A stretch of DNA of 64,000 bases from Guillardia theta CCMP2712 (GCF_000315625.1 NW_005434571.1:76027-140026), one strand, 5' to 3'. Positions 3,214-62,164 are shown, numbered from the stretch's first letter. Notes: generated from the letters alone by a model not told the origin. Numbers and translations: made by a program.

Positions 3214-4305
3214 TCACAGATAATTACACTTTTGTAAACCCCAGACCATCTCCTCGTCCTTGCTCTCCTCCTCCTCCCCCTCCCCCTCCCCCTCCCCCTC
3301 CCCCTCCTTCTCCTCCTCCTCCTCCACCTCCTCCTCGTCAAGGATCAACTTTGCTGCCTCCTCCCCTCCTTCCATCTCCGCAAGCAGTACCCCGAGATCA
3401 GATCCTCCCTCCCATGGCTCCCTCCCATCCTCCAGCTCCAGCCCCTCCCAGCTCCCCGCACTCTCATTCTCTCCTATCGTCCAGTACCTGTCTCCCCCAA
3501 GCAGCGCTCCCCCGTCTCCTACCTCCACACCCTCGTCCGAGTCCTCGTGCTCTCCGTCCACTTTACCAGCCTCTTCTCCCAGACTGTCCCTGCACCCCCG
3601 CCCACTTCTCAGGCACCGCAAGCACGGCCGGCCCTCGTCGCACCCTACCTTGGACCGACGACAAGCCTCGCACGCCCGCACCACCTGCTTCCTCCGGTGC
3701 TTCAGCCGCCTGCACGAGTACCTCCACACCTCCAGCTGCTCCGGGCTCATCTGCATCCGCGGTCCCAGCGCAGGAGCAACGCTCGCCAGGCAGTCTCTGC
3801 ACGCCTGAACCACGTTCCCCCCGCACCTCGAGCAGGGTCTTTCCATGCTGCACCGGACCTTCTTCTGCCGGCACCCCTCGCACGACCGTCGCTTCATCGC
3901 TGGGCCAGCCGTCTCCTGCAGACCGCTTGCGCTGCTCCTCGCCCCCGTCATTGAAAGCCCTTGCGGGGGCCTCTGCACGCTGTACGCCAGGCATGCTTGT
4001 CCGCAGCCTTGCCGCAGGCAGCGCGTGCAGGGGCGGCTGTCGTCGCACTTGACCTTGTTGAGCTTGCATCGCAGACAAGCGGCGAAGGCCCGGGAGCGTT
4101 GAGTCGGATCGACAGGAGAGGCAGTGTCCGCCATGAGTAGAGGAATGATGAGAATGAGTTTGGTAAAGAGAGCGGGCAGACGCTCGTAAGCAAGTTCGGA
4201 AGACGAGCTCAGAAGAGGTAAAGTGCGGGAAAGGATCAAAAGGATCCTGTCATCATTGCCAGCTATGTCGGAAGCATCCGAATCGTTGCGGATGTACAAA
4301 GACAA
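3214..4305 (-). CDS. Triple Zn(II)2Cys6 transcription factor, copy 1, acidic E/G-rich tail (likely ATG at 4134)
   Basis: Three CX2CX6CX5CX2CX6-8C motifs: CLRCKLNKVKCDDSRPCTRC..C, CEGCRQKKVRCSMERPCSRC..C, CEACRRSKVGCDEGRPCLRC..C. Confidence 0.85.
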   Translation of the reverse strand: MSLYIRNDSDASDIAGNDDRILLILSRTLPLLSSSSELAYERLPALFTKLILIIPLLMADTASPVDPTQRSRAFAACLRCKLNKVKCDDSRPCTRCLRQGCGQACLAYSVQRPPQGLSMTGARSSASGLQETAGPAMKRRSCEGCRQKKVRCSMERPCSRCGGNVVQACRDCLASVAPALGPRMQMSPEQLEVWRYSCRRLKHRRKQVVRACEACRRSKVGCDEGRPCLRCLRSGRGCRDSLGEEAGKVDGEHEDSDEGVEVGDGGALLGGDRYWTIGENESAGSWEGLELEDGREPWEGGSDLGVLLAEMEGGEEAAKLILDEEEVEEEEEKEGEGEGEGEGEEEESKDEEMVWGLQKCNYL

Positions 4306-4764: not shown

Positions 4765-5195
4765 AATGTGAGGAATCCTTCTGTCTTTGCTGCATCAGCG
4801 TCATCTGATACTATCAAGAAAGTAGACGGTTGGAGGGATTACCCAGACCAACTGACTGACATCGACTGGATAGCCAAAGTCAATGAATCTTAGTTCTTGA
4901 GAGCACAACTCCGATCATCCAGGAGTGTCTTCCCCATGAAACGCTCCCCTGATACCTCGAGATTCCTCTCGCCTCTTCCGGCTCTCGGCCATCCTCTTGA
5001 CCTCACAAACCTCCTAGTCTCTGTCGGTCCCTTCTAGCGGGCTGTCCTTGCAACCCCGCCCTGGCGGCGTGCTAGTTGTGATTGGCTCCGACTTTGATCC
5101 AGGTGTTGCGACTCTTGTGTGTCATGTTCTGCGTTCGCAATCAACCAATGAATGCACGATAGGATGGCAGTCATTCTGCAAGAATGTATACAACA
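4765..5195. mobile_element. LTR fragment related to the LTR starting at 10725
   Basis: 4765-4942 matches 10784-10971 closely. It ends TGTATACAACA (5185-5195), the reverse complement of the LTR start TGTTGTATACA at 10725. Confidence 0.7.
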
Positions 5196-5516
5196 TACGA
5201 CCTCCTAGGTTTGCCATCAGATCACCTTCACGTCACTCAACGACTCGATTAAACGTCAAGTCAAAATGGATCGTCCTTCCAACGGAGCTGATTGTAGTGA
5301 AAACAGCAATGCCATGTACAAAGCACCGAATGCTGAGTCCTAATAGATAGCATAAGACAGACGGTTATCGTGCTTGCCGCACATACGCGTGAAATAACGC
5401 CACCAGCAAAAACAATGACGTCACAATGTAAATGAATACAAATCTTTATACAAACGCTGACGCAAAAAAAAACAAGATAATTCGAAGCTTCCTTCAAACG
5501 ATCCAAGAAAGTCACA

Positions 5517-6419
5517 TCAAACAGCTTTGTTTCCTTCCAAGCAACAAAAATAAATGCCCCCGTCCTCCCAGAATGACCTCCCTGCTTCCTTCCTTGCTTC
5601 CTCCTCCGCCAGCAGCAACCAATCATTTGATCTTTCCAACGGCTCCTCCAGCTCCAGCCCCTCCCAGCTCCCCGCACCCTCATCCTCTCCCAGCAGCGCT
5701 CCCCCGTCTCCTACCTCCACACCCTCGTCCGAGTCCTCTTGCTCTCCGTCTACCTTGCCAGCCTCTTCTCCCAGGCTGTCCCTGCACCCCCGCCTTGTTC
5801 GCAAGCACCGCAAGCACGGCCGGCCCTCGTCGCACCCTACCTTGGACCGACGACACGCCTCGCACGCCCGCACCACATGCTTCCTCCGGTGCTTCAGCCG
5901 CCTGCACGAGTACCTCCACACCTCCAGCTGCTCAGGGCACATCTGCATCCACGCCCCCAGCGTAGGAGCAACGCTCGCCAGGCAGTCTCTGCACGCCTGG
6001 ACCAGGTTCCCCCCGCACCTCGAGCAGGGCCTCTCCATGCTGCACCGGACCTTCTTCTGCCGGCACCCCTCGCACGACCGTCGCTTCATCGCTGGGCCAG
6101 CCGTCTCCTGCAGACCGCTTGCGCTGCTCCTCGCCCCCGTCATTGACAGCCCTTGCGGGGGCCTCTGCACGCTGTACGCCAGGCATGCTTGACCGCAGCC
6201 TTGCCGCAGGCAGCGCGTGCATGGGCGGCTGTCGTCGCACTTGACCTTGTTGAGCTTGCATCGCAGACAAGCGGCGAAGGCCCGGGAGCGTTGTGTGGGA
6301 TCGACAGGAGAGGCAGTGTCCGCCATGGATGGAGCACCGACAGAGAGGGGAGAGTATGTCGCAGGCGCTGGCGGCAGGGCTGGAGTGCTGTACAGGGAAG
6401 GGCCAAGCACGGAGCTCAT
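5517..6419 (-). CDS. Triple Zn2Cys6 transcription factor, copy 2
   Basis: Same three clusters; MSSVLG start shared with copy 3. Confidence 0.85.
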   Translation of the reverse strand: MSSVLGPSLYSTPALPPAPATYSPLSVGAPSMADTASPVDPTQRSRAFAACLRCKLNKVKCDDSRPCTRCLRQGCGQACLAYSVQRPPQGLSMTGARSSASGLQETAGPAMKRRSCEGCRQKKVRCSMERPCSRCGGNLVQACRDCLASVAPTLGAWMQMCPEQLEVWRYSCRRLKHRRKHVVRACEACRRSKVGCDEGRPCLRCLRTRRGCRDSLGEEAGKVDGEQEDSDEGVEVGDGGALLGEDEGAGSWEGLELEEPLERSNDWLLLAEEEARKEAGRSFWEDGGIYFCCLEGNKAV

Positions 6420-6668
6420 GGTGCCGAGGGACCAGAGGAGACAGGAGTGGACGACTGCATGAGGACTTGCGGATGTATATATAGTATGGACAGATGCATC
6501 AAATATATATATATACAAAGATTTCGTCAGCACCATCAGCTGCTTGTCGGGATCTTCCGAATCGTTGTGTGATTAAGTCCCCTTGTGGGCCACTGGCTCC
6601 GAGATTGTACCAGAAAGCCCTCAGGTCCGAAGTCCCTCGTGACCGTGAGGGATCACTGATCAGTCAAA

Positions 6669-6860
6669 CGTTGTGTGACTGCGGTACCATACCTGAGTTC
6701 ATCATGTGTGACTGCGGTACCATACCTGAGTTCATCATGTGTGACTGCGGTACCATACCTGACTGAGTTCATCCGAACCGTTGTGTGACTGCGGTACGGC
6801 ATGAGTCACGTTTATGTGCGGTACCGTACTTATCAGTACGGTACCATACCTGAGTTCATG
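6669..6860. repeat. 33-bp tandem repeat TGTGTGACTGCGGTACCATACCTGAGTTCATCA (two perfect units, a third with a 4-bp insertion, then degenerate units)
   Basis: Units start at 6672, 6705 and 6738; no spacers. Confidence 0.9.
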
Positions 6861-7900
6861 ATCCGAACGGAGTTTGAAAACTTCACTTTGCCAGTCAACG
6901 GGATCCGACGGCGAACCGTTGGACCGTTGTAGCGGTGTAACTGCAGCCATGCGGCGCGCGGCTCTGATTAGTACGGTACGGTGTGACCTGACTCTGAGTC
7001 GCCGGGGACTCCGGGACCGGCGCCGCGGGCCCGGGAGTACGGCGTAGTACTTGCGGCGCCGGACTTTTCGAGTCAAAACTTTCACGTTCGCCATTCAAGT
7101 CGAGTCGGTTGCCATCAATGATACAATCAAAAAGTTTGCCGCGGGGCCTACGATTCAATAACTAAGTTACTGTTAAGATCGGAGGCTCTGCGTCTCCGAG
7201 GGCGCGGCCGCACTCTCGCCGGACTCGGGAGGCTCGAGTCCGGGCCGCGCCGGGCGGCCCGGCGGCAAGGGCCCTGGCCCCGGCCCGGCGGCAAGGGCCT
7301 GTCGACTGAGTCCGCCCGCCGAGCCGCCGCGGCAGTGACTTGCCAAGTTCCGGGGCCGCCATACCGTAGTCACTGAATAGTACGGTGTCGGAGGTGCGGC
7401 CCGGCCGGGGGGGGCAGCCCTTCCGAAGTTCCTGGCAGTTCGGAGGCTCCCGGAGCAGCCTCAGTGGCAGGCCAGTGTGCCGCGCGGCGCGGCGGCAGCC
7501 GGCGCCACACTGTAACGGTGCACATTGAATCAGTCCGAATCTGTGACTGGGCTTGACAGTGACCCGGCGTGACTGACTCGGAGTAACGGTTGAACCTATA
7601 GTACGGCCAAAAGTCTGCCATGATGCCCAATGATGACATGATCAGTGATGACGGACTGACTAGTGACACGGCCAACGCCGGGCCCCGTGACGGCCGACTG
7701 CTGTCTGACGGTCCCCCCGGCAAACTTGAGTATTAATTGATTGAGAGGCGGCTCCGTCCCGCACAGTGGGAGTTGCCCAGTTTTACTGCGGCCAGTCACA
7801 GGCCGGGCTGTGGCACCGGGCCGCCTTGCTCGGAGTCACACTGCCGCCGGCCGGCGCCGCCGCCAGACCGTTCAACGGCCCGGGTTGACGATCGGAATGA
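6860..7900. repeat. GC-rich palindromic-word island
   Basis: Dense CCGG, GGCC, GTAC, GATC, GASTC, CASTG, GTSAC and CTSAG words; no credible ORF. Confidence 0.8.
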
Positions 7901-8217
7901 CTTTCAATTTTTAATCAGCACTCAGTTATTAACAGTACTACAGTGAGTGACAACTTTCAGCTATGATTTGGCAGAGCCGACTCTCAATTTCCCAAAGCAG
8001 ACTGAGTCGGCCAATTTCCCAAACAAAGACTGAGCCACACTGATTCAACGCGGCGGGCTAAAGCCTGCCGCAGACGGTGGCTGCATGGCAGTCACTCGGA
8101 CATTTCCATGGGATCATGAGCCTGATCATCATCGAGCATCTAAGCCACAAGCAGGGGAGAGTTAAAGGATTCACAGGAGGAGACTTGTGCATGACATGGA
8201 TTCAGCAAAATCTCAAA

Positions 8218-8895
8218 TCAGTCGTCGCCCAAGCTGTCGTTCATGAACGCAGAAATCCAGCTGGCGTCGAGGGGCTCAAATGGAAAATCAAACAGAGCCC
8301 CTTGAGAAACATCCTTCCCTTGCTCTTCTATGGTCTGAGTTTCGGACTTGATTTCTAAGACTTCTCCAGCCTCCTTTGTATCAGCGTGAATGTGCAAGGG
8401 ATTTGTCGTGTGTTCTGCTTCTGCTGACTTTAGAGGCCAATGTTCAACCCCACTGCAGTCGACCAGTCCTTGTTTTGCAAAGTCTGCATCGGTTGCTGAC
8501 TTTGAAGGTGAAGGGCTGTACTCGGTCGTGCTTTCTTCATTTTCGTCTGACGACTCCTGCACAGCAGCAGTGGGAGAAACCATTCTGAAAACCGCCTTAG
8601 GTCTAATGCGAGAATATGGCCACTTGGAGATCCCAACTCGTCGACAAGCTGCTTTCATTGCCGTCAGAGAGATCCCCTGTCGCGGAAAAGGTCAGAAACA
8701 TATCAATTTGAACAATATGATGCGATACCAGATAAGCTGCTGCTTCAGTCTGCCTGAGATGGAAGAGACTCTCTATCTGCTTTTGGGGGATTTGAAACAT
8801 TTTCTTTCCCTGTCGGAGTTCATTTTATCTCGGGGTGTAACCAAGATTTCAATATGATCGTTGTCACTTTTGTACATCTCGGTATCCTGATTCAT
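8218..8895 (-). pseudogene. RWP-RK transcription factor copy 1 (1-bp deletion near 8825; possibly translated from the Met at 8800)
   Basis: IESLFHLRQTEAAAYL | intron 8677-8728 | GISLTAMKAACRRVGISKWPYSR. Reads cattttatctc against catttttgtctc in copy 2. Confidence 0.75.
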
Positions 8896-8979
8896 TTTGA
8901 AGGATGGATTTTCGCTATCTCAACGTAGAGTCGAGCAAATTCGTATACGTACTGTCGGAGCTGCAATACAGTTTTCTTT

Positions 8980-11010
8980 CCCACCGTGGATGTGTCCAGA
9001 ACCGTCGTTTGCAGTAAGTGCAGAAACTTAATTTGGGGGACTCGAACCGGAGGACTGTGCGGGAGCTGGGGAGGGCTGAACTCCTGGCGTCGACGGAGAG
9101 GGTTGAAGGGCACAAATAGGCTGGAACCAAGAAGACGGTTTGACGAAGGCGAAAGCTTTCTGTGCTAGAAGCGACATCGTGGCAGCTGTAGCAGGATGCA
9201 TGTGCGCTATGGGGACCATAACGAGTCGAACTTCCGGGTCGAGAAAACCACGGTTGGCGAATTGTTGACTGAGAAGATTGTGCTCTTGAAATACGACAGT
9301 TTCAGATTTGTATAGTAAAAGTTCGTCGACATAACGTTGCGTCCGAAGAGTATAATCAGTGATCGATTCGTTGATGCCTTGACAGAGATTGGTCACTTGG
9401 TGCTGTAGGGGATGTGAGCCGCGGGAGAAAATTGCTGCGTGATGAAAAGACAGAATTCCGGCCAGGGAAGAAGGAACCTTTCGTGAAGAGGACGATCGTG
9501 AGACATGCGTTGAAGAACAGAGTCATCAAGAAATGTCGTTGTATAGTAAACCCATAGATTGCCGGGAATGCGTTGAACAGACAGAGCGCGTCCCATCTGA
9601 GAGAGCCAGCTGTGAATGCTTCGAGAGTCAGCCTGACCGAGAAAGGGGGTGATGGACATTCTGGGCTGAAATTTCGGGAGTTTGTCACCAGGGAAAGATT
9701 GAGAAGGACGGACGGGCGTGGGCTGAGGAATCAGCGACATGCATACGTCACGAGAGGGATTCTGCTGCATGTTAGAAGCACGAATACCTGGCAACGGAGT
9801 CATCTGTTTCTCTGGCAAGAGAGAAACTGGAGGCGGAGCTTCGGGAATCGATGAAGGGTCTGGCTCAACCGGGATAACATGCGTGTACATCAGCCGAGGG
9901 CTGGGAGGGGAGGCAGAACTCGCCATGCGCGGAGACGTCTGCGCACTAGACGGTGCGTACATCAGCCGAGGGCTGGGAGGGGAGGCAGAACTCGCCATGC
10001 GCGGAGACGTCTGCGCACTAGACGGTGCAGGGAGGGGCTTCAAGCGCTGGATTTCTGCCACAGAGGTTGAAAGGGCGGAAACAAGACGGTCTTGAAGTTC
10101 GTAGGATTGAGCAAGTAGACGATCATGGAATTCCTGAGATTGCTCAAATTGACGATCCAGCTTGCGTTCAAGTTCTTCTTGACGTTGCTGGGCATCCTTG
10201 CGGGCATCTGCGTTCTGTTGCAGGAGTAAAGCAAAAAGTTGACGAAGAGACGGTTCCTTGTCGTTGGTAGCAGGAGAATTTCGACCTGAAGACATCGCAG
10301 AGATGGGCTCTGCGGCAGGGGTACGCGGAGAAAATGCACCAAAAGCGGAATTACAGGAAGGATGCGGAGCTGGAGACTCCGGAACGAAGATAGACGGGGC
10401 TGGTACTGGCGTGAAAAAGAATGGGCGAGCACCAGAAGCTGGATGGGAATCCTGCTGTGGTCGATCTTGCATAATTGAATCATCATCTCTCGTTGCGGAA
10501 AAAGGACGGGGGAATTGAAACTGTTGAGCTCCAACATTTGGGTGAATCGAAGTTGAATCAGCGACTTGTTCTGTAGATCTCGGAATCCTTCGTTCACTGG
10601 TCTGAGCCTTACGCGATCTTTTCACTTTCAACAGTTTGCTTGCTTTCTTTCAGTGCTGAAATCATTCTTGGAATCGTTCGAGATTCTGAATCAAAGCTGG
10701 AATGTGAACCAATTCGCTACCATATGTTGTATACACAACCTTGCGTAAGACGTTGAGCTCAGATGATCTTAGGATCTCTGTTTATGTGAGGAATCCTTCT
10801 GACTTGTTGCATCAGCGTCAACTGATACTATCAAGAAACTTGTAGGCGGTTGGAGGGGTTACCCCAAACCAACTGACTGACAACGGCTGGATAGCCAAAG
10901 CAAATGAGTCTTAGTAGTTAGTTCTTGAGAGCACAACTCCGATCATCCAGCAGTGTCGTCCCCATGAAACGTTCGACTACATTGGTCCAGGTGTTGCGAC
11001 TTGTCTTGTC
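8980..11010 (-). mobile_element. Truncated LTR retrotransposon (gypsy-like): LTR part + PBS + frameshifted gag, no pol
   Basis: ORF 9393-10631 has capsid-like FLGQAD..HSWL..LPWPEFCLFITQQFSP. It continues out of frame as NLCQGINESITDY, then a CTYC knuckle remnant near 9010. In-frame 72-bp tandem duplication at 9885-10028. LTR begins TG at 10725. Confidence 0.75.
10705..10722 (-). other. Primer-binding site TGGTAGCGAATTGGTT, initiator-Met-tRNA type
   Basis: Lies 2 nt from the LTR CA end. TGGTAGCG is the yeast Ty1-type iMet PBS start. Confidence 0.7.
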
Positions 11011-11852
11011 TGTTATGTTCCTGGAAGTTGGTAGAAAGGGGGAAGGAAGGAGAGAGAGGTCAAAGGGAAGGGGGAGGGGGTGACAGAGTTTGGGGGCATT
11101 GGGGTGAGTTGATGTTTCTTTTGGCAGGTGGATGCAGAAGTTGGTTCACAACGCTAGGAGAGAGGCTCTGAAGGGAAGTGCGGCAGACGCAAAGATCTTA
11201 ACGAGGGAGTGGGGGTGGCTTTAAACCCCCACTCAGGTATCGTACTGCAATCACACAACGGCTCAGAGATAGCTATTGAAAAAAGTCTGCGACCAAGTTC
11301 GCCTTGACAGCGAGCTCGACACAGGGGTCTTACTAGAGCACAACGAGCACGACAAGTATGATTCTTCGCAGTATGTGACATCTATTAATAACAGGAACCT
11401 AACCGTGAACAGCATGCCGTGATGGGAACCTGGGTTCCGATGCGTGCCATGGTAGCAGCCGTTGCTAGAAGCAATCTTGAGAAGTCTGAGCTCCTTTGAG
11501 TTGCAAGATATATAGAAACTGGGACCTGTCCTCGCATCCATCGTCGCGCGGTCCTCTTCCAGCATCGTATGACATGAAAAGTAAACTTTTTGAGAAAAGT
11601 GCAGAGCGAGCAATCTTTAACTAAAACTTTCCGGGGCTGCGGCAAGTCACGAGGGACTTCGGACCTGAGGGCTTTCTGGTACAATCTCGGAGCCAGTGGC
11701 CCACAAGGGGACTTAATTACACAACGATTCGGAAGATCCCGACAAGCAGCTGATGGTGCTGACGAAATCTTTGTATATATATATACATCCGCAAGACTCC
11801 TCTTGCACAGATATTCCTCGTCCTCTCCTGTCTCCTCTCGTCCCTCGGCACC

Positions 11853-12797
11853 ATGAGTTCCGTGCTTGGCCCTTCCCTGTACAGCACTCCAGCCCTGCCG
11901 CCAGCGCCAGCGACATACTTTCCTCTCTCTGTCGGTGCTCCATCCATGGCGGACACTGCCTCTCCTGTCGATACGACACAACGATCCCGGGCCTTCGCCG
12001 CTTGCCTGCGATGCAAGCTCAACAAGATCAAGTGCGACGACAGCCGCCCATGCACGCGCTGCCTGCGGCAAGGCTGCGGTCAAGCATGCCTGGCGTACAG
12101 CGCGCAGAGGCCCCCGCAAGGGCTTTCAATGACGGGGGCGAGGAGCAGCGCAAGCGGTCTGCAGGAGACGGCTGGCCCAGCGATGAAGCGACGGTCGTGC
12201 GAGGGGTGCCGGCAGAAGAAGGTCCGGTGCAGCATGGAAAGACCCTGCTCGAGGTGCGGGGGGAACGTGGTCCAGGCGTGCAGAGACTGCCTGGCGAGCG
12301 TTGCTCCTACGCTGGGGCCATGGGAGGAGGCGCTAGTGCCTTTGCAGATGTGCCCGGAGCAGGTGCAGGCGTGGAGGGACTCGTGCAGGCGGCTGAAGCA
12401 CCGGAGGAAGCAGGTGGTGCGGGCGTGCGAGGCTTGTCGTCGGTCCAAGGTAGGGTGCGACGAGGGCCGGCCGTGCTTGCGGTGCCTGAGAATCGGGCGG
12501 GGGTGCAGGGACAGTCTGGGAGAAGAGGCTGGTAAAGTAGACGGAGAGCACGAGGAATCGGACGAGGGTGTGCAGGTAGGAGACGGGGGAGCGCTGCTTT
12601 GGGGAGACAGGTACTGGACGGTAGGAGAGGATGAGAGTGCGGGGAGCTGGGAGGGGCTGGAGCTGGAGGAGCCGTTGGGAGAGTCAGTTGATGGGCTGCT
12701 GCTGGCGGAGGAGGAAGCAAGGAAGGAAGCAGGGAGGTCAATCTGGGAGGACGGGGGAATTTATTTTTGTTGCTCGGAAGTAAACGAAGCTGTTTGA
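11853..12797 (+). CDS. Triple Zn2Cys6 transcription factor, copy 3 (inverted relative to copy 2)
   Basis: Three clusters. 11647-12868 is an inverted duplicate of ~5440-6643, including upstream DNA. Confidence 0.85.
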   Translation: MSSVLGPSLYSTPALPPAPATYFPLSVGAPSMADTASPVDTTQRSRAFAACLRCKLNKIKCDDSRPCTRCLRQGCGQACLAYSAQRPPQGLSMTGARSSASGLQETAGPAMKRRSCEGCRQKKVRCSMERPCSRCGGNVVQACRDCLASVAPTLGPWEEALVPLQMCPEQVQAWRDSCRRLKHRRKQVVRACEACRRSKVGCDEGRPCLRCLRIGRGCRDSLGEEAGKVDGEHEESDEGVQVGDGGALLWGDRYWTVGEDESAGSWEGLELEEPLGESVDGLLLAEEEARKEAGRSIWEDGGIYFCCSEVNEAV

Positions 12798-13108
12798 AAT
12801 GACATGCTCAGATGTTACCAATGAAGCTTCGAATGATCTTGTTTTTTGCGTCAGCGATTGTGTAAAGGGTGGTTTGGCGTCAGATCACCATCACGTCACT
12901 CAACGACTCGATCAAACGTCAAGTCAAGATGAATCGTCCTTCCAACGGAGTTGATTGTAGTCAAAACAGCATTGCCATGTACAAAGCGCCGAATGCTGAG
13001 TCCTAATAGATAGCATAAGACAGACGGATATTGTGCTTACTGCGTATGCGTGTGAAATGACGCCACCAGCGAAAACAGTAACGTCACAATCTGAATAAAT
13101 AGAAACCT

Positions 13109-13651
13109 TTAAACTTCATATACAATCGCTGACGCAAAAAAAAGAGCAACGCTCGCCAGGCAGTCTCTGCACGCCTGGACCAGGTTCCCCCCGCACCTCG
13201 AGCAGGGCCTCTCCATGCTGCACCGGACCTTCTTCTGCCGGCACCCCTCGCACGACCGTCGCTTCATCGCTGGGCCAGCCGTCTCCTGCAGACCGCTTGC
13301 GCTGCTCCTCGCCCCCGTCATTGACACACCTGAAAGCCCTTGCGGGGGCCTCTGCGCGCTGTACGCCAGGCATGCTTGTCCGCAGCCTTGCCGCAGGCAG
13401 CGCGTGCAGGGGCGGCTGTCGTCGCACTTGATCTTGTTGAGCTTGCATCGCAGGCATGCGTGCTTGACACGATTATGACTCGGAGTTTGAGAGGAGGTCA
13501 ACAAGTGCGGAGGTGGAAATAGCAGAGGTGGGAAACTGGGAAAACAATCGCCGGATCGCGAACGGAGCATTTGACTGTGCGAGGTGAAGACGCTACCGCC
13601 AGGAGCCTCTGCCAATGCAGAGATTGAGATTAAAGGTTGTCTGGATGTCAT
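13109..13651 (-). CDS. Truncated double Zn2Cys6 protein, copy 4 (different N-terminus, third cluster deleted)
   Basis: Clusters 1-2 present. The junction at ~13143 skips ~5472-5965 of copy 2. 12878-13143 matches the copy-2 downstream region 5217-5470. Confidence 0.7.
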   Translation of the reverse strand: MTSRQPLISISALAEAPGGSVFTSHSQMLRSRSGDCFPSFPPLLFPPPHLLTSSQTPSHNRVKHACLRCKLNKIKCDDSRPCTRCLRQGCGQACLAYSAQRPPQGLSGVSMTGARSSASGLQETAGPAMKRRSCEGCRQKKVRCSMERPCSRCGGNLVQACRDCLASVALFFASAIVYEV

Positions 13652-14214
13652 GGCGCTGACCTGTCTGTGCTTGAAGGGGAGAAGCAGCAGCAGGCAGGAG
13701 AGGACGAAACGAGACGGGGAGATCCTGATCCAGCCGAGGCCTCTTGGCGTATCGCACCGTTTGGAGGATTAGTTTGACTGCGAGCTCCGAGATCTTTCTG
13801 GATCAGACAGACCGATGTTCATGAAATCTTTTTATCTCATCGCCTCTTATGAGCTTCCTCTACATACAGCTTTTCCTCTCCTGACAGCTTTGACAAACTG
13901 AATACCGTACATTGGACACAGGTCGCAATCGACCCTCTCGCACCAAGAGCGAGGAACATGCCTGATTGCATGCCACAAGACAACGATGCCGTCTCCGAGC
14001 GACCTAGCTCTGCTATCATGATCATATTATACAGCAAACCTCATCTGTGTGAAAGCGATGATGGATCACATCAAGACGTGAAAATTTTCCGAGGTTCAAT
14101 AGAATCATGTGACAAGAGCTTCAAACGGCAACAATAAGCTTCAGAGACTTCGTGGTCTTCTTCAAGGCATCTCTCTTTCCACCAACTGCTTTTCGAGTCA
14201 GAGTTCTGTAGGCT

Positions 14215-14670
14215 CAGAATCTGCACTGACAGGGCCCGGCCAGGCTGGCAGTCGGCCGGCCCCGGCGGCCGGGGCAGGCCGCGAAGGCTCAGCGCTGCCG
14301 CCCCCCGGCGGCCGGGGCAGGCCGCGAAGGCTCAGCGCTGCCGCCCCCCGGCGGCGGCGATGATCCGATGATCGGATCGCCGCATGATCGCGGGCCCCGC
14401 CGGCCGGGGCCCCGGGCCCCCGGCCGGGTGCCGTTGCCAACGGATGATCCGATCGGACCCGGCGTACACGGTCGGACGGGTGACCGTACGGCGTACGGTA
14501 AACTTCACCGGCCGGGCGCCGGGTCCAAAGTGGCCCCCGCGGCCGGGCCGCATGACGGCATGGCCGGCCCCCCGGCCAGCACCGCTGGGTCAGTGAGTCA
14601 CCGGGCCCCCGGGCACTGTGACTGGCCGCCGGGCGGCCGGGCATTGCGGCACGGCGTGGCCGCGGCATTC
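14215..14670. repeat. GC-rich palindromic-word island with an internal 43-bp tandem duplication (14261-14346)
   Basis: Composition and an exact repeat unit. Confidence 0.8.
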
Positions 14671-14700
14671 AAGGATCTTACAGTTGTTCTTGTCCGTTTC

Positions 14701-14987
14701 TTACTTCCCAGGAAGTTCATCGATCTTGGCAAAGAACATGAACGAGAAAGGTCGGTCAACAAACACGTTGTAAATGATCGTCCCGGGTTTTACAAACTGC
14801 AAGATCGTCCATATCTGCAAGAGAATTGTTAGAACTCCAGATGAAGCAAGCAAGCAAACAAACAACCAGATTGTCATGGAAATCATCGTCATACAAGGAG
14901 TCAGATGACTGATTGTAAATCACTTCAGACATTATGATGTAGTCGAATTTCCCATCCTCTGTTTCGGATTCCTGCTTCAGAGGCCCC
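14701..14987 (-). CDS. Partial METTL21/Methyltransf_16-like SAM methyltransferase exons
   Basis: KFDYIIMSEVIY..DNL | intron | IWTILQFVKPGTIIYNVFVDR. The 5' part presumably falls in the assembly gap. Confidence 0.55.
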
Positions 14988-15007
14988 TGGGATAGATTGA
15001 GCAAGAC

Positions 15008-15737
15008 NNNNNNNNNNNNNNNNNNNNNNNNNNNNNNNNNNNNNNNNNNNNNNNNNNNNNNNNNNNNNNNNNNNNNNNNNNNNNNNNNNNNNNNNNNNNN
15101 NNNNNNNNNNNNNNNNNNNNNNNNNNNNNNNNNNNNNNNNNNNNNNNNNNNNNNNNNNNNNNNNNNNNNNNNNNNNNNNNNNNNNNNNNNNNNNNNNNNN
15201 NNNNNNNNNNNNNNNNNNNNNNNNNNNNNNNNNNNNNNNNNNNNNNNNNNNNNNNNNNNNNNNNNNNNNNNNNNNNNNNNNNNNNNNNNNNNNNNNNNNN
15301 NNNNNNNNNNNNNNNNNNNNNNNNNNNNNNNNNNNNNNNNNNNNNNNNNNNNNNNNNNNNNNNNNNNNNNNNNNNNNNNNNNNNNNNNNNNNNNNNNNNN
15401 NNNNNNNNNNNNNNNNNNNNNNNNNNNNNNNNNNNNNNNNNNNNNNNNNNNNNNNNNNNNNNNNNNNNNNNNNNNNNNNNNNNNNNNNNNNNNNNNNNNN
15501 NNNNNNNNNNNNNNNNNNNNNNNNNNNNNNNNNNNNNNNNNNNNNNNNNNNNNNNNNNNNNNNNNNNNNNNNNNNNNNNNNNNNNNNNNNNNNNNNNNNN
15601 NNNNNNNNNNNNNNNNNNNNNNNNNNNNNNNNNNNNNNNNNNNNNNNNNNNNNNNNNNNNNNNNNNNNNNNNNNNNNNNNNNNNNNNNNNNNNNNNNNNN
15701 NNNNNNNNNNNNNNNNNNNNNNNNNNNNNNNNNNNNN
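15008..15737. other. Assembly gap (730 N)
   Basis: Run of N. Confidence 1.
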
Positions 15738-15879
15738 TAACAACATAAAACGATCTATGAAGAGCTTGGCATATTGGGTTTGATGCGAAAGTGTGATCAG
15801 ATAGAAAACTTTGGTTTCGCACCCAAGTCACCCGCACCTCCCATGACACCGGCGATCGTACTCCCCACTTCCCCTGTGC

Positions 15880-16390
15880 CCCGCCGAACCCTCCAAGCCG
15901 CCCCCTAAAAGATATAACCCGAGTGAACCCGCCCGAACCGCCCCCCGCAGCCCTAGCCCCCGGGGGCCCCCCCCCCCCCCGGCGGCCCGGCCGGCCGCCG
16001 GCCCGGGGCCGGGCACTCCGAGGCTCAGGCTGCCGGGCGCCGTACCGTACGGTACTACCGTATACTATGATTCCGAGGCCGCTTCGAGAGTCAGGCCGCG
16101 CACTGCGGCAGCCGGGAGTCAAGCCGCCCGGCTTCCGGAAGCCCGGCCCCCCGTACCGGGCCTCGCCGGACCGGCCGGCCGCCGGTACGCCGGCCGCCGG
16201 GCCCCGCGGGCGCCACTCAGGCGAGTGCGTGACGGGTTGTACGGGCATACGATGATCCTGAGTACCCGGGGCGTCTGGCCGGGCAGACAGTCCGATCACG
16301 GCTGATGACTCGGAGAGCCTCCGGCCCACTGGCCCAGCGAGAGTCGGACTGGGCGCGGCACTCGGGGGCCGCGCCGCGAGTCAGCCTAGT
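15880..16390. repeat. GC-rich palindromic-word island
   Basis: Same vocabulary as the other islands. Confidence 0.8.
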
Positions 16391-16673
16391 ATTTCAGACG
16401 ATGAAATCGTTTGAAATACTTTTAATCAGTACTCAGTTATGAACAGTAACAGTATTGACAACTTTCAGCTATGATTTGGAAGAGCAGAACTCAATTTCCG
16501 AAAGCAGCACCAACAAAGAGCCACCGATTGCTTCTCGCCGGGCGGCTTCATGGCAGTGACATTTCCATGGGATCATGAGGCTGATCATCGAGCATCTAAG
16601 CCACAAGCAGGGGAGAGTTAAAGGATTCACAGAAGGAGACTTGTGCATGATATGGATTCAGCAAAATCTCAAA

Positions 16674-17352
16674 TCAGTCGTCGCCCAAGCTGTCGTTCAT
16701 GAACGCAGAAATCCAGCTGGCGTCGAGGGGCTCAAATGGAAAATCAAACAGAGCCCCTTGAGAAACATCCTTCCCTTGCTCTTCCATGGTGTGAGCTTCG
16801 GACTTGATTTCTAAGACTTCTCCAGCCTCCTTTGTATCAGCGTGAATGTGCAAGGGATTTGTCGTATGTTCTTCTTCTGCTGACTTTAGAGGCCAATGTT
16901 CAACCCCACTGCAGTCGACCAGTCCTTGTTTTGCAAAGTCTGCATCGGTTGCTGACTTTGAAGGTGAAGGGCTGTACTCGGTCGTGCTTTCTTCATTTTC
17001 GTCTGACGACTCCTGCACAGCAGCAGTGGGAGAAACCATTCTGAAAACCGCCTTAGGTCTAATGCGAGAATATGGCCACTTGGAGATCCCAACACGTCGA
17101 CAAGCTGCTTTCATTGCCGTCAGAGAAATCCCCTGTCGCGGAAAAGGTCAGAAACACATCAAATTGAACAATATGATGCGATACCAGATAAGCTGCTGCT
17201 TCAGTCTGCCTGAGATGGAAGAGACTCTCTATCTGCGTTTGGGGAATCTGAAACATTTTCTTTCCCTGTCGGAGTTCATTTTTGTCTCGGGGTGTAACCA
17301 AGATTTCAATATGATCGTTGTCACTTTTGTACATCTCGGTATCCTGATTCAT
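16674..17352 (-). CDS. RWP-RK transcription factor copy 2 (intact, 2 exons, intron 17133-17184)
   Basis: MNQDTEM..FHLRQTEAAAYL | GISLTAMKAACRRVGISKWPYSR. 16420-17437 duplicates 7909-8979. Confidence 0.85.
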
Positions 17353-18726
17353 TTTGAAGGATGGATTTTCGCTATCTCAACGTAGAGTCGAGCAAATTCG
17401 TAATGCGAATTGTCGGAGCTGCAATACAGTTTTCTTTGTAGAACTTGTGGGCTGCTGGATTAACCCAAGTATGTAACTCAGTCTGCTACAGGAACGATTC
17501 CGAAAGCAAAGGAGGAAGAGATTCGTCCGCTATTACTATTCTCACGCCAACACCACCTTCACGTCTGTGAACGTGAGCTCGTCGACCAATGGCACAGGAA
17601 CAAAGGCCCCCGATTCTGTACCCTATTGCTCCTACTACCCCTTCCTTGCATAGTTTTCACCCCCCTTCATAGAGTCCCCACCCTCTCTCAGTCGGAACCT
17701 CCATATTACTACAGGCAGTGTTTAACTCCGGGAATCCCCCGCCTCCACACTGTACCCTACCCTGCAAGACGGAGACACTAAATCTGACCCCCTACCCAAA
17801 TTAGACAAATGTACCAGCCTCAGTCACGACCCCTGCAGAAACCTGCTCCCTACCCCTATTCGCCCTCACTTCCTCCTTTGCCGCTCATCTTGTCTCTGCT
17901 GCACCCGTACCCCACCTTGGAGTTGGGCGCTCATGCCGTGCCCGGTCCACCGGATGACCACCCCACCCGGGCCCCATTATTCAGTTCTCGACTCGCTTCA
18001 AAGTTACCCCCCCCGGCTATAGCTCTTTTCAAGTTTCGCATGACCACCCCCACCTACTCCCGCACCCTATCGACGGGGGCGCTTCCGTACATGTCTATCT
18101 CTTGACCATGGCACAATTCAAATAATGATGTTCCACCCACCCCACCCCTCTTTTTGACTTTGTGCGCGAACCGTACGCCCGATATGATGACAACCTATGT
18201 CGGATAAAAGTACCCCTTCATCCTATTCGCTGATGATCGCTGGACCCCTCGGATTTTCATACAAGGACCTGGTCACTCTAGGTCACCTACCCACCCCTGC
18301 TATTAGAGAATCTAATTCCTTATCTTGCCTTTTGCGGCTGCGGTCGGAAGACAAATATGCACCTGACTGATGACCGTGGAACGTGACTAGGCTGCTCAGG
18401 GCCGAGCTCGAAAGTTGAGGCATAGTACGGTATGATGGCTGATCCAGGACCCCTCAGTGGACCCGGCCCGGGGGACGGTCGGACCCTTGATCCAGGACCC
18501 CGGCTGGACGGCCGTGCCGTACGGTCCGATCAAGGCTTCGCCGGCGGCGGGACGGTACTACCGTACGGTGACCGTACGCCACGCGGATCAAGTTCTCTTT
18601 TTTTCAATCATCAGACCGGACCCGGGTGGCATGGTGGCATGTCAAAAAAAAAGCTTTCCGCTGCGCCCCGGCGGGCGCCGGCCGGACAGTCAGCCTCAAC
18701 GGTTCAGCGGCGGCTTTTAGTCAACT

Positions 18727-27589: not shown

Positions 27590-28065
27590 GGCGGCCCCAA
27601 ATCATACGGCAGTGACTCCCGTACCGTACTGCGGCGCCCCGGCCGCGGCGGCGGCGAAGTTTCTTTCCATCGGTCATGGCATCGCCAGCTATCGTTGACC
27701 GTTGTCGCGCCGCCGCCGGGCAGCCACCGCCACTGAGAGTCCGGGCCGAGCCTGGCATGGTCCGATCACGCTGACCGGCCCGGGTCCGTCCGATACTAAG
27801 CCTTCAGCTCGTACTGAAGTTTTACTTAATTGTGAGTAAACTAAACTGTTTTAGCTAAATGCACTGTTGCCTGTATCTGGCAGCCGGCAGCAATGGCTGC
27901 CCCCGCATGGTACTGAGGTTCCCCTGCAGCTGGATAGGTGATCAGAGGGTCGCTCAGCACGCGTAGAACTCAGAGAGCGGTCACCAGCGACTCTCTGCTC
28001 TAGCTGATAGCGTCCCTTCTTCTTCACTGTCGCATGCTCGGACCAGTTTGAGTGGAGTTGCGACC

Positions 28066-38525
<10,460 letters not shown>

Positions 38526-39960
38526 GCCCGGCGAGCGCGCCGGGAACGGCAGTTCCAGCTCACTCCGACTGAGCGCCGATTCGTCCGGCGATTCGTCCCC
38601 CACCCCCCCCCCCCTGGGCCCTGGGGACGGTCACAGCGGCCGTTCAACCGTTGTTCCGATGATCAAAAAACTATGCCATGATGATTGATACAACTTCAAT
38701 TCTTCTCTCTGACATACTGGAGCCTAGTACGCCGCGGTCCTGCCAGGCTGGCCGGGCGGTACCGGGCCGGGCCGGGCCCGAGCGTGACCGTGACTCTCAG
38801 CACGGCCGCTGATGATGTGATCGCGGGGACCGTACCGTAGCTGCCGTCCGGGACTCTCCGAGCCTCCGCTCAGGAGTCCGAGCCTCGGACCGGCCCGCCC
38901 GGGGCAGGCTTGAAACGGTCACTAAGTTCGTTGTGAGTAAGTGGAAAATCAGACGGGAGTTGCCAGTTGAAATACCACGGTCCCGGCCGGACCGCGGGGG
39001 GGCCGCGCGGCGCACAGCCGGGCCCTGTACGGTCGGCCCGGCGTCACGCAGCCTGCCGCTGCCGGCTCCCGGGCGAGGAGGCTGAATCGGTGGCAGTGAG
39101 CCGCCGGGAGTCCGAGGGGAGTCAAACTCCGAGGCTCGGCCGAGTGCGGCCGCGCCGCGCGCCGCGCAGTGTGCGGCCCGGCGCGCGCCCCACTGACCCG
39201 GCGTGTTGCGGCCAGTCACTGAGCCTCGGAGCATTGGCAAAGTTCACCGTGAGTCACCGGATCGGACTGGCCGCGCTGCACCGCCGGGCCGCGGCACTGA
39301 GTGAGCCGCTCGGGGGGAATTGTCCTGCGCGGCAGTGAAGCAAGTGAAGCGGCGGCCCGGGTATCAGTTAAGTTTGGGGGACAGCAGTCGGCAGGATTGG
39401 GTTTGGTTCTCGCTATCGAGTGAAGTTTCTCTTCTCGCCGTTTGGCCAGTGCCACCGTGCCACCGTGGCACGGGCACGGTGCGACAGTGATTGGGCCAGT
39501 CAGTGGGCCGGGGGGCGGCCGGGATCGGACTCCGCCCGTCCGACGCCGTGATCGGACCGTCCGAGTCTCGGACTGGGAGGCTCCAGGGCCCGCCGGGGCC
39601 CGGGCCCGGCCGCCCGCCCGGCCACCCCGGCGGGCCGCCCGGCCCGCCGCCCGGCGGGGCCCGCCGGCCCGAAAAGGCCGCGACTTCAGAACGGGTCACG
39701 GACTCAGTTGAGTGCGGCCCTGAGCCCGGAAAAGGCCGCGACTTCAACGGGTCACGGACTTGGCAGTTGATTTTTCACTTACTATCCGACACTTCAGGCT
39801 TTGAGTAGAGTGACCCACTGCCCAGGCTGTCAGTGTCTAGACGTAACTTCGGCGGTTGGAGGCTCGCGGCGGGCGGCTTAGTGGCCGCCGCACTGGGCCC
39901 GTGACTGACTCGGAGCCCCGGCGGGCAGCACACAGGCTCTGGGGCCAGCCGCGTGACTCT
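38526..39960. repeat. GC-rich palindromic-word island
   Basis: Same vocabulary; shares a skeleton motif with the island at 62165-63550. Confidence 0.8.
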
Positions 39961-39987
39961 ATTTTACCGTGCCTCAATACTTCTTCG

Positions 39988-40161
39988 TACTGATTTTTCA
40001 CTTAACTTTGAGTAAAGTCTACCGTACAGCACTTTACTAATCGGTAGTCTTACCCGGATCAACGGTTTACTCAATTGAACCGTGCGGTACCGTACTGTGA
40101 CTGTACCGCAAGTACACACAGTACCTGAATCCTTTGCTCAAAGTTGAGTTAAAAATCAGTA
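39988..40161. mobile_element. MITE-like 174-bp element with 30-bp inverted ends bounded by TA
   Basis: TACTGATTTTTCACTTAACTTTGAGTAAAG matches the reverse complement of 40132-40161 at 27/30. Confidence 0.7.
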
Positions 40162-41164
40162 GAGTAGCAGCAGCTTTACGATTTGGCCCCCGAGCGCAAA
40201 CCGAACTGTTTTTTTTTTTGTTAGATGGCTCCGCTATCTTTACTACTGAAATCACGAGGCAGCAGAACGAGGCCCTTTCAGATCCCCACCGAAATCCTAC
40301 CACCCCTTGGGGCTACCACCCGCTGGAGCATTGACTGACAAGTATACCCGTTCAAACAACAGCAATGGGATGGTGAATGCACCCCGTCATCCTGGAGACT
40401 TTGCCGGACTACCCCCCTTTTGAGTAGGCCGAAACAAACTTCTTGCAAAAAGCCTCGATTTATTTTCTTTTTCGTGAGTTTTTGTTTTTGGTAGAGGGTT
40501 TTGGGAAAGAGGGACCACTTACTACCCTCATAGTATTAACTTAGAGCCTCACTTATGAATAACTTCAGCTTATAGGCAAGGAATGCTTCCGCGCTTTCCA
40601 TGCAGTCGTGACCTTGTCCCCCTAGCTTGCCCATCCCTCGGTCCATTTACACAGTCATAACCATTCAGCACAATGAAATTTTGAAATTTGATAGTGTAGG
40701 TTGAAACAATGCGTTGCATTGCCAAAAGGGTTAACTCCAATTCGATGCATGATCAATGGGTAGGGGTAGGTGGGGTGGTCAATTCGTGCTCCACGAGCTG
40801 TATAAGGTGAAGTACTCGTGAATCGTTAGGGTAGGGGTACAAACCTGTGGTGGGTACTAAAAACAATTTTCCAATTTTAGGAAATAACTCCATTGAAACG
40901 ATGAATAAACGGGACGATTCGATTGAAGAGTTAACTCCAAACGATATGAAAGGAGTTATTTTCACAAGAAGTGGTATCGGAGGCCCTTAGCACCTCTCTC
41001 AAAGATATCATCTTCCCCCCCTTCACCACCATTTCTATCCTCTTGCTGTTGTTACGAAGACACGAGCCTCTACACACAGTCAAAGTAGCGATCCTCCGCC
41101 GCCTTCGTACCTACCATCCCTCCATCTTCCAGATCTGATCAACCAAACAGTGACGTACTGAAAC

Positions 41165-45921: not shown

Positions 45922-46320
45922 AGCTCCGGTATCAAATACACGCAATGCACTCTTGTGTATGACAGGGTATAAAATCTGATTATAATAAAGAGTACCAGGT
46001 TAGTTTTATGGGTACAACTTTAGTACTGTGATTCTGAAAATATTTCTGAGGGATGCGCGTTTTTAAAATTCCAAGGAGTCGAAGGAACAAACAATTTTGG
46101 AGGGACGCTCTAGCTGTAGATTTACAAATGGATTCCGTCGTACTTTGGGGGTCATCCATCAAATTGCTGCTCTAAATTTGAAATCACAAGAACAAGATAC
46201 AATCAACCATCTGGTGAGTCACAACCCGCCGGTGACCGGTCCGACTCTCCGACCGCGGCCACAGGACTTCATCCGATCGGACGCGGCTGCCGTCAATGCT
46301 CTCCACTACTGTCAGAATCC

Positions 46321-47321
46321 TCGTACTGATTTTTAACTTAACTTTGAGTAAAGAAGTCAGAATCCTGACCGGCGAGGGACGTGACTTTCCAGTGACTCCC
46401 GGAGCCATCCTTAAGTCACAATGCTCCGATGATTCAACCGAACTTGAATGCTTAGCAACTCTTCAAACTGGCCCGGGGGGCAGGCTGCCGGGCGGCCCGG
46501 CCCCGGCAGCCGACGGCGAGGCGCCTCGGGCCCGGGCCCGGAGCGCGGCGGGGCCGGCCCGGGGGCCCGCGCCGCCGGGCGGCCGGCCCGGCGGGCGGAC
46601 CGTTGGGCCTGACCGGCGGCCCGGGGGGCCGTCGGACCATGAGCCCGGTGACGATTACGGGGTGACCGTACTGGCGGCCGGCGAGTCGGCCGCGCCGCGG
46701 CGCGGCCGGGCGGGCCCGGGGCCGGGCCGGGCCGGCGGGCCCGGGGACTGCCAGTCCCACACGGTCGGCCGCTTCCAGTTCAACGGTTCCGCCGCCGCCC
46801 GGCCGGCAGTGACTGCGGCAATGCCGCAGAACATAGGATCGGACCGGGTGCCGGGCACCGTGCCACCCGGCGTGCGCCGGGCCCGGGAGCCGCTGGAGCC
46901 GCCTCCGATACTCGGACGGGAGTCAGCACAGTGAGTGACGGTACTACCGTGCCAGGTCACCGCCCGGGTACGGGCACGGTATCGGACTGGCGGCCTAACT
47001 TAACTGAGTCAGTGTCGGGCCGACTGCCAGCCTCCCTGTCGGAGCGGCAACTCCCGGCACGGACTCCCGGACTCCAGGCTCGTCCGCCGTGATCCCCCCG
47101 CCCGGCGGCTGAGTGGCCGCACTGCACTTAGTGCTGACAGTGAGCCTAGTATGAGGCCCTTCAACCGGGGCGGCCCAGCGTCGCCGTACTACCGTACGGT
47201 AACCTGTCACTGGCCAGTTCAGCCTGTGCGACAAAGTCAGGGCCAAGCCTTCTCGATCCGACGGACTTGGGGTCGTTCAACGGTTCCTGATTGTCCTCGA
47301 TCTTATTTAAAACTCAGTAGA
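46321..47321. repeat. GC-rich island bounded by the TACTGATTTTTAACTTAAC motif
   Basis: Motif at 46321-46353; degenerate inverted copy at ~47300-47320. Confidence 0.75.
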
Positions 47322-47802
47322 ACTTTGAATACCCGGTGCCACTGGGCGCCACAAGGACGGCCTTGTCCAAGGCTCAGAGGCAGTGACAATCAGCGCGGTA
47401 TTCTGAGCGTCAACGGTGTCTCCCGTTAAGGACTGTGGAAGTCCATGTCGCAGCTGATCAAAGCAAGTTACTCCGTGCACCGGGCTGAGCTTTTTGGATG
47501 AAGCAATGCCGTAATGCTGTGCAATGAGCCTGCAGGCCCAAGCCTCTTAAGTTCGTTGACTGTCCGATTGTGACATTGGAATGCAGCTTGAACTTCTTTC
47601 ACTTTCAGGTATCAGTATATTACTATATTGTCGGATCATGGTGACATAGATGCGTGAATGAACAAGCATACGATACTGATTATGATTCATATACTGACAT
47701 TCAAGTTCGGTACTGACATTGAAGTTGCGGCATGAGAGCAAAATAATATCCAAGATGAGTGACAAACACACCCCTATCGCCAAACACATCCCTAAACACC
47801 AC

Positions 47803-61000: not shown

Positions 61001-61897
61001 ACCGTCGAAGTTTTGTCGTCTTGAAGAGAGACAGACACCTCAAGGAAGACTGGGGCAGATACTTCAATCTCAGCCTTCGATCCTTCGGACGGATTCACGT
61101 CAGCTTGATTTAGGAAATTCATTCCTGCCATTTTAGGTCACAACAACATGGCAATGCATCGCATGGTTACCTGACGATCCCTTGTTGGTCATCCTCGTTT
61201 GTTTCATATGCTTCTCCTTCTGAGTTGCGCTGTTGAACCGGTTTCTGGGATGATCCATTGGGTCTCGATCATGAAAGTGAGTGTTGCCTCTCTTCTCCGG
61301 ATGCATGGGATCAGCGTTGATAAAGACGTCCTTCGCATTCGATGGGAGCATATTTTTGGTCTTGACCATCAATTCGTTGAGAGCAGGAGAGATTTTCATT
61401 CCAGCTGGAAGATGGTAGACAGCTTCGACGCCGTTGATTGCTTCGACTCGACTCTTCATATGAAACTCCATGGCCACTACGTAAGTGTCGTAAGGGATGT
61501 ACTGCAAATATTTGTCCCCGCTCGCCACTTTCAAGGCCTGCATCAGGTTTGGAGGGGAAGGATGTTGAACCCTCACCAGGTAATGACTCTTGCCAGAAGC
61601 TTCGAGGTTGAGCTCAAGATCTGTAGGGACATCTTGCACTGTAGTCCTTAGCTTCGTCTGACTGCGCTGCTGTGTGTGATGATGCAGCGCCGCCATCGGG
61701 TTATGGATCAGCAAAGGTCTGCCAGGAAGGTCCTTCACTGATATGGTGGAAGCGCGCGCTCGCTCCCCGCGGAGCGGCTCCTCATTGTGAGGTCCTCCAG
61801 TGTCTGTCTGGATGGCTGCTGTACAGCACACGACTAGCCCTAAGCATGCGATTATCCTCATCATCCTCCCTCCCCTCTCATTCTCGCCAGCGGCCAT
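55018..61897 (-). CDS. Large secreted S8 subtilase (KP-43-like) with PA, EGF, Cys-rich CDDGN repeats and a CUB-like domain; intron 61125-61170
   Basis: Signal peptide MMRIIACLGLVVCCTAA; triad DTGID / HGTHVAGT / GTSMATP; AAGNSG; TLVWTDPP..NNLDL..NNVEQ. A 46-bp GT-AG intron joins the two ORFs in frame. Confidence 0.9.
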
Positions 61898-62164
61898 GAT
61901 ACGTTTCGACCTACCCCACCCTTTTCCTTTTATAGACAAAACGATGGGCCGCTCAAGTCAAGTAGGGACCTTCGATAGGCTTGGTCCTACGGGTCCTACG
62001 GCTTGCCCCTATCAGCTGGGGCATATCACCCTATTAAAGTACCCTGTCAGTGATGGCTCGGGGAAGGGGTGGAGTACAGGCCACAGTCCCGTTGTGTACC
62101 CGGAGCTCGCGGCTGCCCAGCAGCCGGGTCAGCATTAGGCAACCTGCCGTACTAATGATTGTCC

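Follow-up and report, generated by a model that had tools for sequence, protein, structure and literature searches.

Short GC-rich additions to non-coding DNA and the possible origin of an intergenic GC-rich island in the nuclear genome of Guillardia theta

The window analysed here was a stretch of 64,000 nt (C103:76027-140026) of the 87.1-Mb, 669-contig genome of Guillardia theta. Its background GC was approximately 0.50, and about nine GC-rich islands were found in it. The islands were non-coding, 0.3-1.8 kb in length and 0.63-0.73 in GC (0.68 overall), with no strand skew. CpG observed/expected was approximately 1.0-1.2 in the islands (1.05 overall) compared to 0.78 in the background. The islands had the composition, length and proximity to gene starts by which CpG islands are recognised (GC, CpG observed/expected >0.6, >200 bp). 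We focused on island A, a GC-rich block of approximately 1.2 kb at about 6669-7908. It was intergenic, located between copy 2 of a Zn-cluster gene (5517-6536, minus strand, Pfam Zn_clus), upstream of which it lay, and a gene beginning near 8100. RNA reads covered the region from approximately 8020, to the right of island A. Reads stopping at 8099 ran on into the 20 nt (16538-16557) preceding the paralogous position 16558, which meant that the expression signal at 8019-8400 came at least partly from the paralogous gene. The sequence of island A was confirmed by contigs of two public runs of different years, with 0 differences over 6733-8157 and 1 difference over 6733-8106; the two runs were possibly of the same strain, and one was possibly the source sample. 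No polymorphism was found in island A among the public runs examined, which were probably of one strain. Island A is real DNA.

The Zn-cluster family comprised genes without introns, each encoding a protein with three Zn(2)-Cys(6) stretches, located in the window at 3214-4305, 5517-6536 and 11753-12797 and on contigs C144, C78, C189, C16 and C35. The family was arranged in tandem on C189 and as inverted pairs on C16 and C35. The patchy identity of 89-99% among the copies suggested, as far as their sequences could indicate, gene conversion. Copies 2 and 3 had been described as an inverted duplication, and this was borne out by the 99% identity of the arm ends. The region 5444-6643 paired with 12867-11646, and the arms stopped at 6643 and 11646. 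In addition, there was a large direct segmental duplication (4766-8979 and 10784-17437, in blocks 87-97% identical). The inverted gene copy with its flank (10975-12867) was inserted in the second unit, so the inverted duplication belonged to a rearrangement of greater complexity. A direct comparison of 4947-5207 with 10975-11230 revealed no homology. The other Zn-cluster copies compared (copy 1 of the window and copy 4 on contig C144) stopped at approximately 6281-6327 and did not extend to the upstream DNA. A multi-copy element at 8980-10785 sat between both units of the segmental duplication. Its read depth was 5-40 times that of the flanking DNA, and 49 or more candidate places were found for it genome-wide. 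It carried a 412-aa ORF (9393-10631, minus strand) without a Pfam match. An exact 72-bp tandem duplication at 9885-10028 was skipped in the contigs of both runs. The features at island A, at its counterpart upstream of Zn-cluster copy 3 (the plain copy) and in two further islands are listed in Table 1.

Table 1. Coordinates of island A, its paralogous regions and the element copies associated with islands (positions in the window; rc, reverse complement)
Feature	Position	Strand	Remarks
Inverted-duplication arm, last 140 bp, upstream of Zn-cluster copy 2	6504..6643		99% identity to rc(11646-11785)
Tandem array of about five 33-nt units made from the 30-mer	6669..6861	+	Array of about 190 bp; plain copy has one unit, 11231-11260(-)
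Three-anchor block, paralog of rc(11177-11202)	7172..7214	+	Split by two short GC-rich inserts
GC-rich island core	7215..7884		About 71% GC, no strand skew; no homolog detected in window or genome
Island A right edge and flank	7885..8098	+	Paralogous to 16397-16557
Gene-side duplicate	8099..8979	+	97% identical to 16558-17437
Demonstrable paralog of 6669-7214	11176..11260	-	30-mer match and gap-penalised block
Stretch private to the plain copy, from arm to 30-mer	11261..11645	-	385 bp versus 25 bp in island A
Positive control, element positions 1-206 over 783 bp	39235..40017	-	In island 38243-40018; 3.8-fold stretch
Element positions 4-89 in 116 bp	47216..47331	-	At right edge of island 46369-47249, points into island; 5 inserts, 37 bp

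The preliminary description proposed that the islands were not a copied repeat family, and our searches agreed with it. A genome-wide search with 6660-7900 found only the query itself, so that there was neither a second copy of island A nor a near-identical full-length copy elsewhere in the genome. BLAST of island against island gave low-complexity matches only and no family with defined ends. Terminal repeats with a target-site duplication were sought at island A and were not found, and no duplication flanked it. Only weak inverted matches of 70-72% were present (7115-7146/7713-7744 and 7155-7184/7921-7950).

The left end of island A was related to the plain copy by a 30-mer. A match of 26/29 had been noted at 6669-6697, and it proved to be slightly longer, with 27/30 between 6669-6698 and rc(11231-11260). 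The 18-nt core of the 30-mer, GTTGTGTGAYTGCRGTAC, occurred at three places in the whole genome, all within these two loci. The two loci are thus true paralogs, and the 30-mer is more than a frequent word. Within island A, it was expanded into the 33-nt array, of which the first 2.8 units were identical and the later ones were degenerate, with inserts inside. Deeper degenerate units at 6925-6990 were plausible by eye, but they did not exceed reversed-sequence controls and were rejected. Head-to-tail units in island A were confined to this array and to a 26-bp tandem duplication inside the core, at 7255-7299.

Beyond the 30-mer, the next part of the plain DNA had been proposed to recur as ordered anchors across the whole island, with about 175 bp corresponding to about 1,060 bp. 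All of these anchors were present where they had been described. We performed a collinear chain test with free gap extension, in which the next 151 nt of plain DNA were compared with 6699-7750. The score of this cheap-gap test was within the null, and dinucleotide shuffles equalled it in 5-47% of trials. It was also equalled by 4/18 other-island targets and by 20/150 random plain 151-mers from the window. When gaps were penalised by distance, a single block emerged, GTTAAGATC / TGCGTCT / GCCGCACT, pairing 7172-7214 with 11177-11202 (z of about 5-6). Under the four gap settings that isolated the block (open 2-3, extension 0.1-0.3), 0-1 of 300 shuffles equalled its score, and under the laxest settings 2-30 of 300 did. 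None of the 18 other islands reached it, and two of the 150 random queries did. The anchors of the block were contiguous in the plain copy except for two bases. In island A they were separated by GGAGGCTC at 7181-7188, which replaced TT, and by CCGAGGGCGCG at 7196-7206, and these two inserts held words typical of the inserts in the element family described below. The anchors past 7214 (CCCTTC, AGCCTC, TGAACC, GCCAAAAG, CCCAATG and CCCCC..CAAACT), tested alone, were at or below the shuffle level. The ordered-anchor proposal thus held for the 30-mer and the block at 7172-7214, and everything after 7214 was at the level of chance. The correspondence of 175 bp to 1,060 bp failed, since shuffled sequence and some other islands could score as well. 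Demonstrable paralogy was therefore limited to 85 bp of the plain copy (11176-11260) versus 546 bp of island A (6669-7214). Only the left third of island A could be traced to ordinary DNA by these alignments.

The plain copy was not an unaltered ancestor. Its private stretch of 385 bp spoke against this, and within that stretch a fragment of a dispersed repeat was located at 11419-11568. The block was 529 bp away from the arm in island A, compared to 444 bp in the plain copy. Between the 30-mer and GTTAAGATC, the plain copy had 28 nt (11203-11230, minus strand) that began with GGGGGT and, past an 8-nt loop, continued into ACCCCC, giving a 6-bp stem. These hairpin-forming 28 nt may themselves be an insert in the plain copy.

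A second comparison was available at the right edge of island A. Homology ended at the right edges of island A and of its counterpart, island 15804-16420, and the interiors of the two islands did not align. Immediately outside, 7909-8000 was 88% identical to 16420-16507. Over the 190 bp adjoining island A, 125 bases matched and 11 differed from the paralog. There were 11 extra pieces (54 bp) on the island A side versus 1 in the paralog, and these are relative counts, as only two copies were compared. The extra pieces included ACTGAGTCGGC, GACT, CACTCG and, at about 8060, one of 20 nt that paired as a hairpin with its left flank. In contrast, the 881 bp of the gene-side duplicate had only three small indels (1, 1 and 3 bp). 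Other non-coding paralog pairs of similar divergence showed 1-4 indels, which were not GC-rich. In one contig of run X1 (depth 40 versus 54-94), 7977 was joined to 8099, omitting 121 bp that held most of the extra pieces. The junction could represent either a structural variant or a chimera of the two paralogs.

The word content of the islands was also analysed. Words of 8-10 nt were common to different islands as often as they were repeated within one, in both orientations. Direct repeats no more than 60 bp apart showed an 8-12 fold excess at k = 12-14, and no local excess of inverted repeats was found in the islands. The direct-repeat excess was consistent with exact tandem duplications that arose recently, of 26, 33 and 43 bp. 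The exact 43-bp duplication was located at 14260-14345, inside another island. Part of island growth is ordinary short tandem duplication. The islands had been described as filled with GC-rich palindromic words. Palindromes of 6-12 nt were about twofold above a first-order model, yet equal to a third-order Markov model, and palindromic 4-mers and 6-mers were at 1.03 and 0.68 of the maximal-order Markov expectation. No palindrome excess remained once the 3-/4-mer composition was modelled.

The polarity of length changes was obtained from a dispersed element for which the genome had 274 or more candidate places. Approximately 784 bp were common to many of its copies, which were 98-99% alike, and this part overlapped the end of a 559-aa ORF without a Pfam match. 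The copies had a common end and variable length, which would fit a 5'-truncating retroelement. We aligned 30 element copies, and each was scored against the majority of 11 young copies, so that insertions and deletions could be told apart. There were 139 private insertions (857 bp) versus 29 deletions. In the copies with <8% substitutions, the ratio was 87 to 14. Clean private inserts were present even in near-consensus copies, one of which had 0.5% substitutions and four inserts. The median insert length was 5 bp with a size mode of 4-12 bp, and single-base events were rare (13/139). As a control of the pipeline, six coding Zn-cluster copies were treated in the same way, and no private insertions were found in them. 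The repeat family at 11419-11568 was considered as a replicate and was rejected as too old and too fragmentary.

The inserts had a composition and vocabulary of their own. Their GC was 0.66 compared to 0.57 for the element, and only one of 100 inserts of at least 4 bp was a tandem duplication. Junction repeats averaged 1.44 nt versus 0.75 expected (Mann-Whitney p = 1e-7), and their lengths fell monotonically from 0 to 6 nt with no fixed-length target-site peak. The insert words were island-like beyond composition, with a log-odds of 0.098 per base versus -0.013 +/- 0.015 when letters were shuffled within inserts. The enriched 4-mers were ACTG, CTGA, CTCA, AGTG, AGTC, GATC and CCGA, and the 4-mer profiles of inserts and islands were correlated (rho 0.46, p = 2e-8). 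Private insertions of 3-25 bp in non-coding DNA carried the island words ACTG, CTGAG, GAGTC, CCGAG, GATC and GTACGG. Templating from the flanks was at chance level: the insert fraction found in an event's own +/-40 nt flanks was 0.58/0.60, and that found in the flanks of other events was 0.59/0.58. Donors were sought genome-wide for three inserts of 18-22 nt, and none was found elsewhere for the 22- and 19-mers with up to 2 mismatches. The 18-mer had one other place at 1 mismatch, which was not above the reversed control. Substitutions in the copies showed no AT-to-GC bias, with 197 W>S versus 214 S>W and an equilibrium GC of 0.55 versus an element GC of 0.57. The density of insertions in the 30 copies tracked age (rho 0.77) and was related to flank GC weakly (rho 0.32, p 0.09), so the locality of insertion rested on few cases. 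Insert positions recurred among different element copies. This recurrence was only suggestive and could in part be due to common ancestry of the copies or to stacking in the alignment.

Copies of the same element were also present in islands. The copy at 39235-40017 served as a positive control. Its anchors of 24-58 nt were parted by GC-rich inserts of 7-36 bp and by one 519-bp block. This block contained the element end a second time, again interrupted, together with a local duplication of approximately 40 bp. The free-gap chain test gave a score of 124 for this copy versus 16.4 +/- 2.2, with z near 49. This meant that the test had power and detected a truly inflated copy. The segment 39268-39462 matched the element at 126 positions and differed at 6, and it had five inserts (63 bp in total) and one deletion of 4 bp. 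The inserted bases per substitution were about 10 in this segment compared to 1.5 in the 30-copy set. Another copy, at the edge of island 46369-47249, was interrupted in the same manner (Table 1). Short pieces of the 784-bp element, all from the same end of it, were also observed at or just outside island edges, at 27804-27840, 40132-40164, 46301-46353, 62120-62188 and 63259-63356. These edge fragments could mean that the element inserts preferentially into islands, or else that islands develop on its copies.

In this genome, pre-existing DNA gains short GC-rich pieces that use the island vocabulary, as observed in one repeat family and one window. The preliminary description had proposed a local process that keeps inserting short words. 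The short GC-rich additions in the element copies agreed with this, and the anchor chain in island A was mostly chance. The idea of an insertion process therefore held better than the anchor evidence first offered for it. We consider that island A probably grew in place, with its core as an advanced state of insertion and short tandem duplication. Ordinary spacer DNA would have been the starting point, in which one remnant, the 30-mer, was amplified to the 33-nt array and the other was split by two GC-rich inserts. Accumulating short inserts and tandem duplications would have brought the island core beyond recognition. For the core at 7215-7884 we infer an origin by insertion, extrapolated from 6669-7214 and from the element family. 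Insertion would also appear to be faster in or next to islands than elsewhere. As a guess at the mechanism, repeated breaks in open promoter DNA might be repaired by end joining with polymerase-added nucleotides, of the Pol theta or Pol X type. Such end joining would account for the insert sizes and junction microhomology, and it would leave the fixed vocabulary and the strong insertion bias unaccounted for. More speculatively, and in our view rather doubtfully, a dedicated sequence-specific machinery might write a donor-less vocabulary of short words into break-prone intergenic DNA. Earlier inserts would attract later ones, spacers and dead repeats would become kilobase GC-rich promoter islands, and paralog homology would be erased. 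Such a machinery could be an RNA-templated or a nuclease-plus-polymerase system.

Growth in place was weighed against several other origins. Island A could be unrelated DNA, if the duplication ended or was rearranged near 6643-7214 and a few large insertions or replacements followed, with the 30-mer and the 24-nt block alone shared. The lack of significant anchors past 7214 is in line with this, as are the large private stretches in both copies (385 bp and 473 bp) and the fact that in the plain copy no more than about 200 bp remain up to 10974, the start of another duplication unit. Even the positive control contained a 519-bp block. However, island A had no other copy or donor in the genome and no terminal repeats with target duplications beyond the weak inverted matches, and both 7909-8098 and 7172-7214 showed many small inserts and not one large insert. 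We regard unrelated DNA as unlikely. It is also conceivable that the ancestor had the island and that the copy at 11080-11260 lost it via many deletions. A comparison of two copies would formally allow either polarity, but deletions were approximately 5-6 times rarer than insertions where polarity is known, in the element family. Moreover, the plain copy has one 30-mer where island A has an array of five units, the young ones identical, which is indicative of expansion, and the extra pieces carry island words. Such a loss is highly improbable.

The nature of the inserts bears on the remaining explanations. They might be excision footprints of cut-and-paste transposons that revisited preferred sites, with the words as leftovers of transposon ends. 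Recurrent insert positions in independent copies, a limited vocabulary rich in CACTG/CAGTG-type words, the net insertion bias and the 4-12 bp size mode would be expected from such footprints. Their junctions, however, had no peak at a fixed target-duplication length, one of 100 inserts duplicated its flank, inserts of up to 18-36 nt had unique sequence, and no matching transposon ends were identified, which makes this origin very unlikely. An origin from short mobile palindromic GC elements that insert as units, of the yeast mitochondrial GC cluster or green-algal organelle repeat type, appears extremely improbable. Short GC-rich pieces did break AT-richer DNA, and the 8-10-nt vocabulary was equal within and between islands. 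Against this, the inserts varied in length and sequence, the long ones searched were unique genome-wide, no family with defined ends was shared between islands, and palindromes were not above the 4-mer composition. Finally, we give hardly any credence to ordinary compositional evolution, in which a promoter CpG island would have been sharpened by GC-biased gene conversion with fast turnover. The CpG observed/expected of 1.05 versus 0.78, the GC of 0.68, the absence of strand skew and the position between genes would suit it. In the decaying element copies, however, no AT-to-GC bias was found, GC was gained via inserted bases, and homology was lost by length change and not by substitutions.

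The insertion process was compared with known systems. Pol theta end joining with terminal-transferase-like additions gives inserts of a few to about 30 nt with short junction microhomology and occasional snap-back, and its signature includes templates in nearby flanks and frequent deletions (PMC4912351, PMC4490562, PMC11292364). The insert size, the junction microhomology of 1.44 versus 0.75 nt and the 20-nt piece at about 8060 that pairs with the left flank resembled such scars. In contrast, flank templating was at chance, there were 29 deletions versus 139 insertions, and the word vocabulary was genome-wide. In V(D)J joining, N-nucleotide addition by terminal transferase at processed breaks is de novo, donor-less, GC-rich and a few nucleotides long, and N regions have no word structure beyond composition. 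The short GC-rich additions here were likewise donor-less, but they used specific words, and the events were germline, dispersed and cumulative. In yeast mitochondria and as palindromic repeats of algal organelles, GC-rich pieces inflate AT-richer non-coding DNA, and these clusters are discrete mobile units of recurring sequence (PMC4478555, PMC3017802, PMC4524435). Older non-coding sequence was similarly broken up by short GC-rich pieces in our case, but in a nuclear genome, with unique and variable inserts and no unit family. The islands were like vertebrate-type CpG islands in being GC-rich blocks of about 1 kb, without CpG depletion, in gene-upstream spacers. Recent paralogs can be aligned across vertebrate-type CpG islands, which are conserved, whereas here homology stopped at the island edge beside flanks that were 88-97% identical. 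The 33-nt array at 6669-6861, the exact 26-bp and 43-bp duplications and the direct-repeat excess within 60 bp were minisatellite-like; unlike in minisatellites, tandem duplication covered a minority of the added DNA, and 99 of 100 element-family inserts were not tandem.

Literature searches for a described equivalent of the insertion process found none, in agreement with the preliminary description, which knew of no mechanism with such a signature. The novelty is provisional, as its basis is a single repeat family, a single window and literature searches without a match, and the process may be an extreme variant of end-joining mutagenesis. If the reading is correct, a nuclear genome would build intergenic GC-rich islands by adding short new DNA to old, and not by base substitution, biased gene conversion or transposon copies. 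In that case, genome growth and promoter-like sequence would have a new source, and this would explain intergenic DNA that is unalignable even between paralogs with 97% identical genes. Dated repeat copies provide both polarity and rate, which makes the process accessible to direct tests. Elsewhere in the window, an uninterrupted 2037-aa ORF was observed at 55018-61131 (minus strand), with subtilase, PA, EGF-like and DUF4215 domains.
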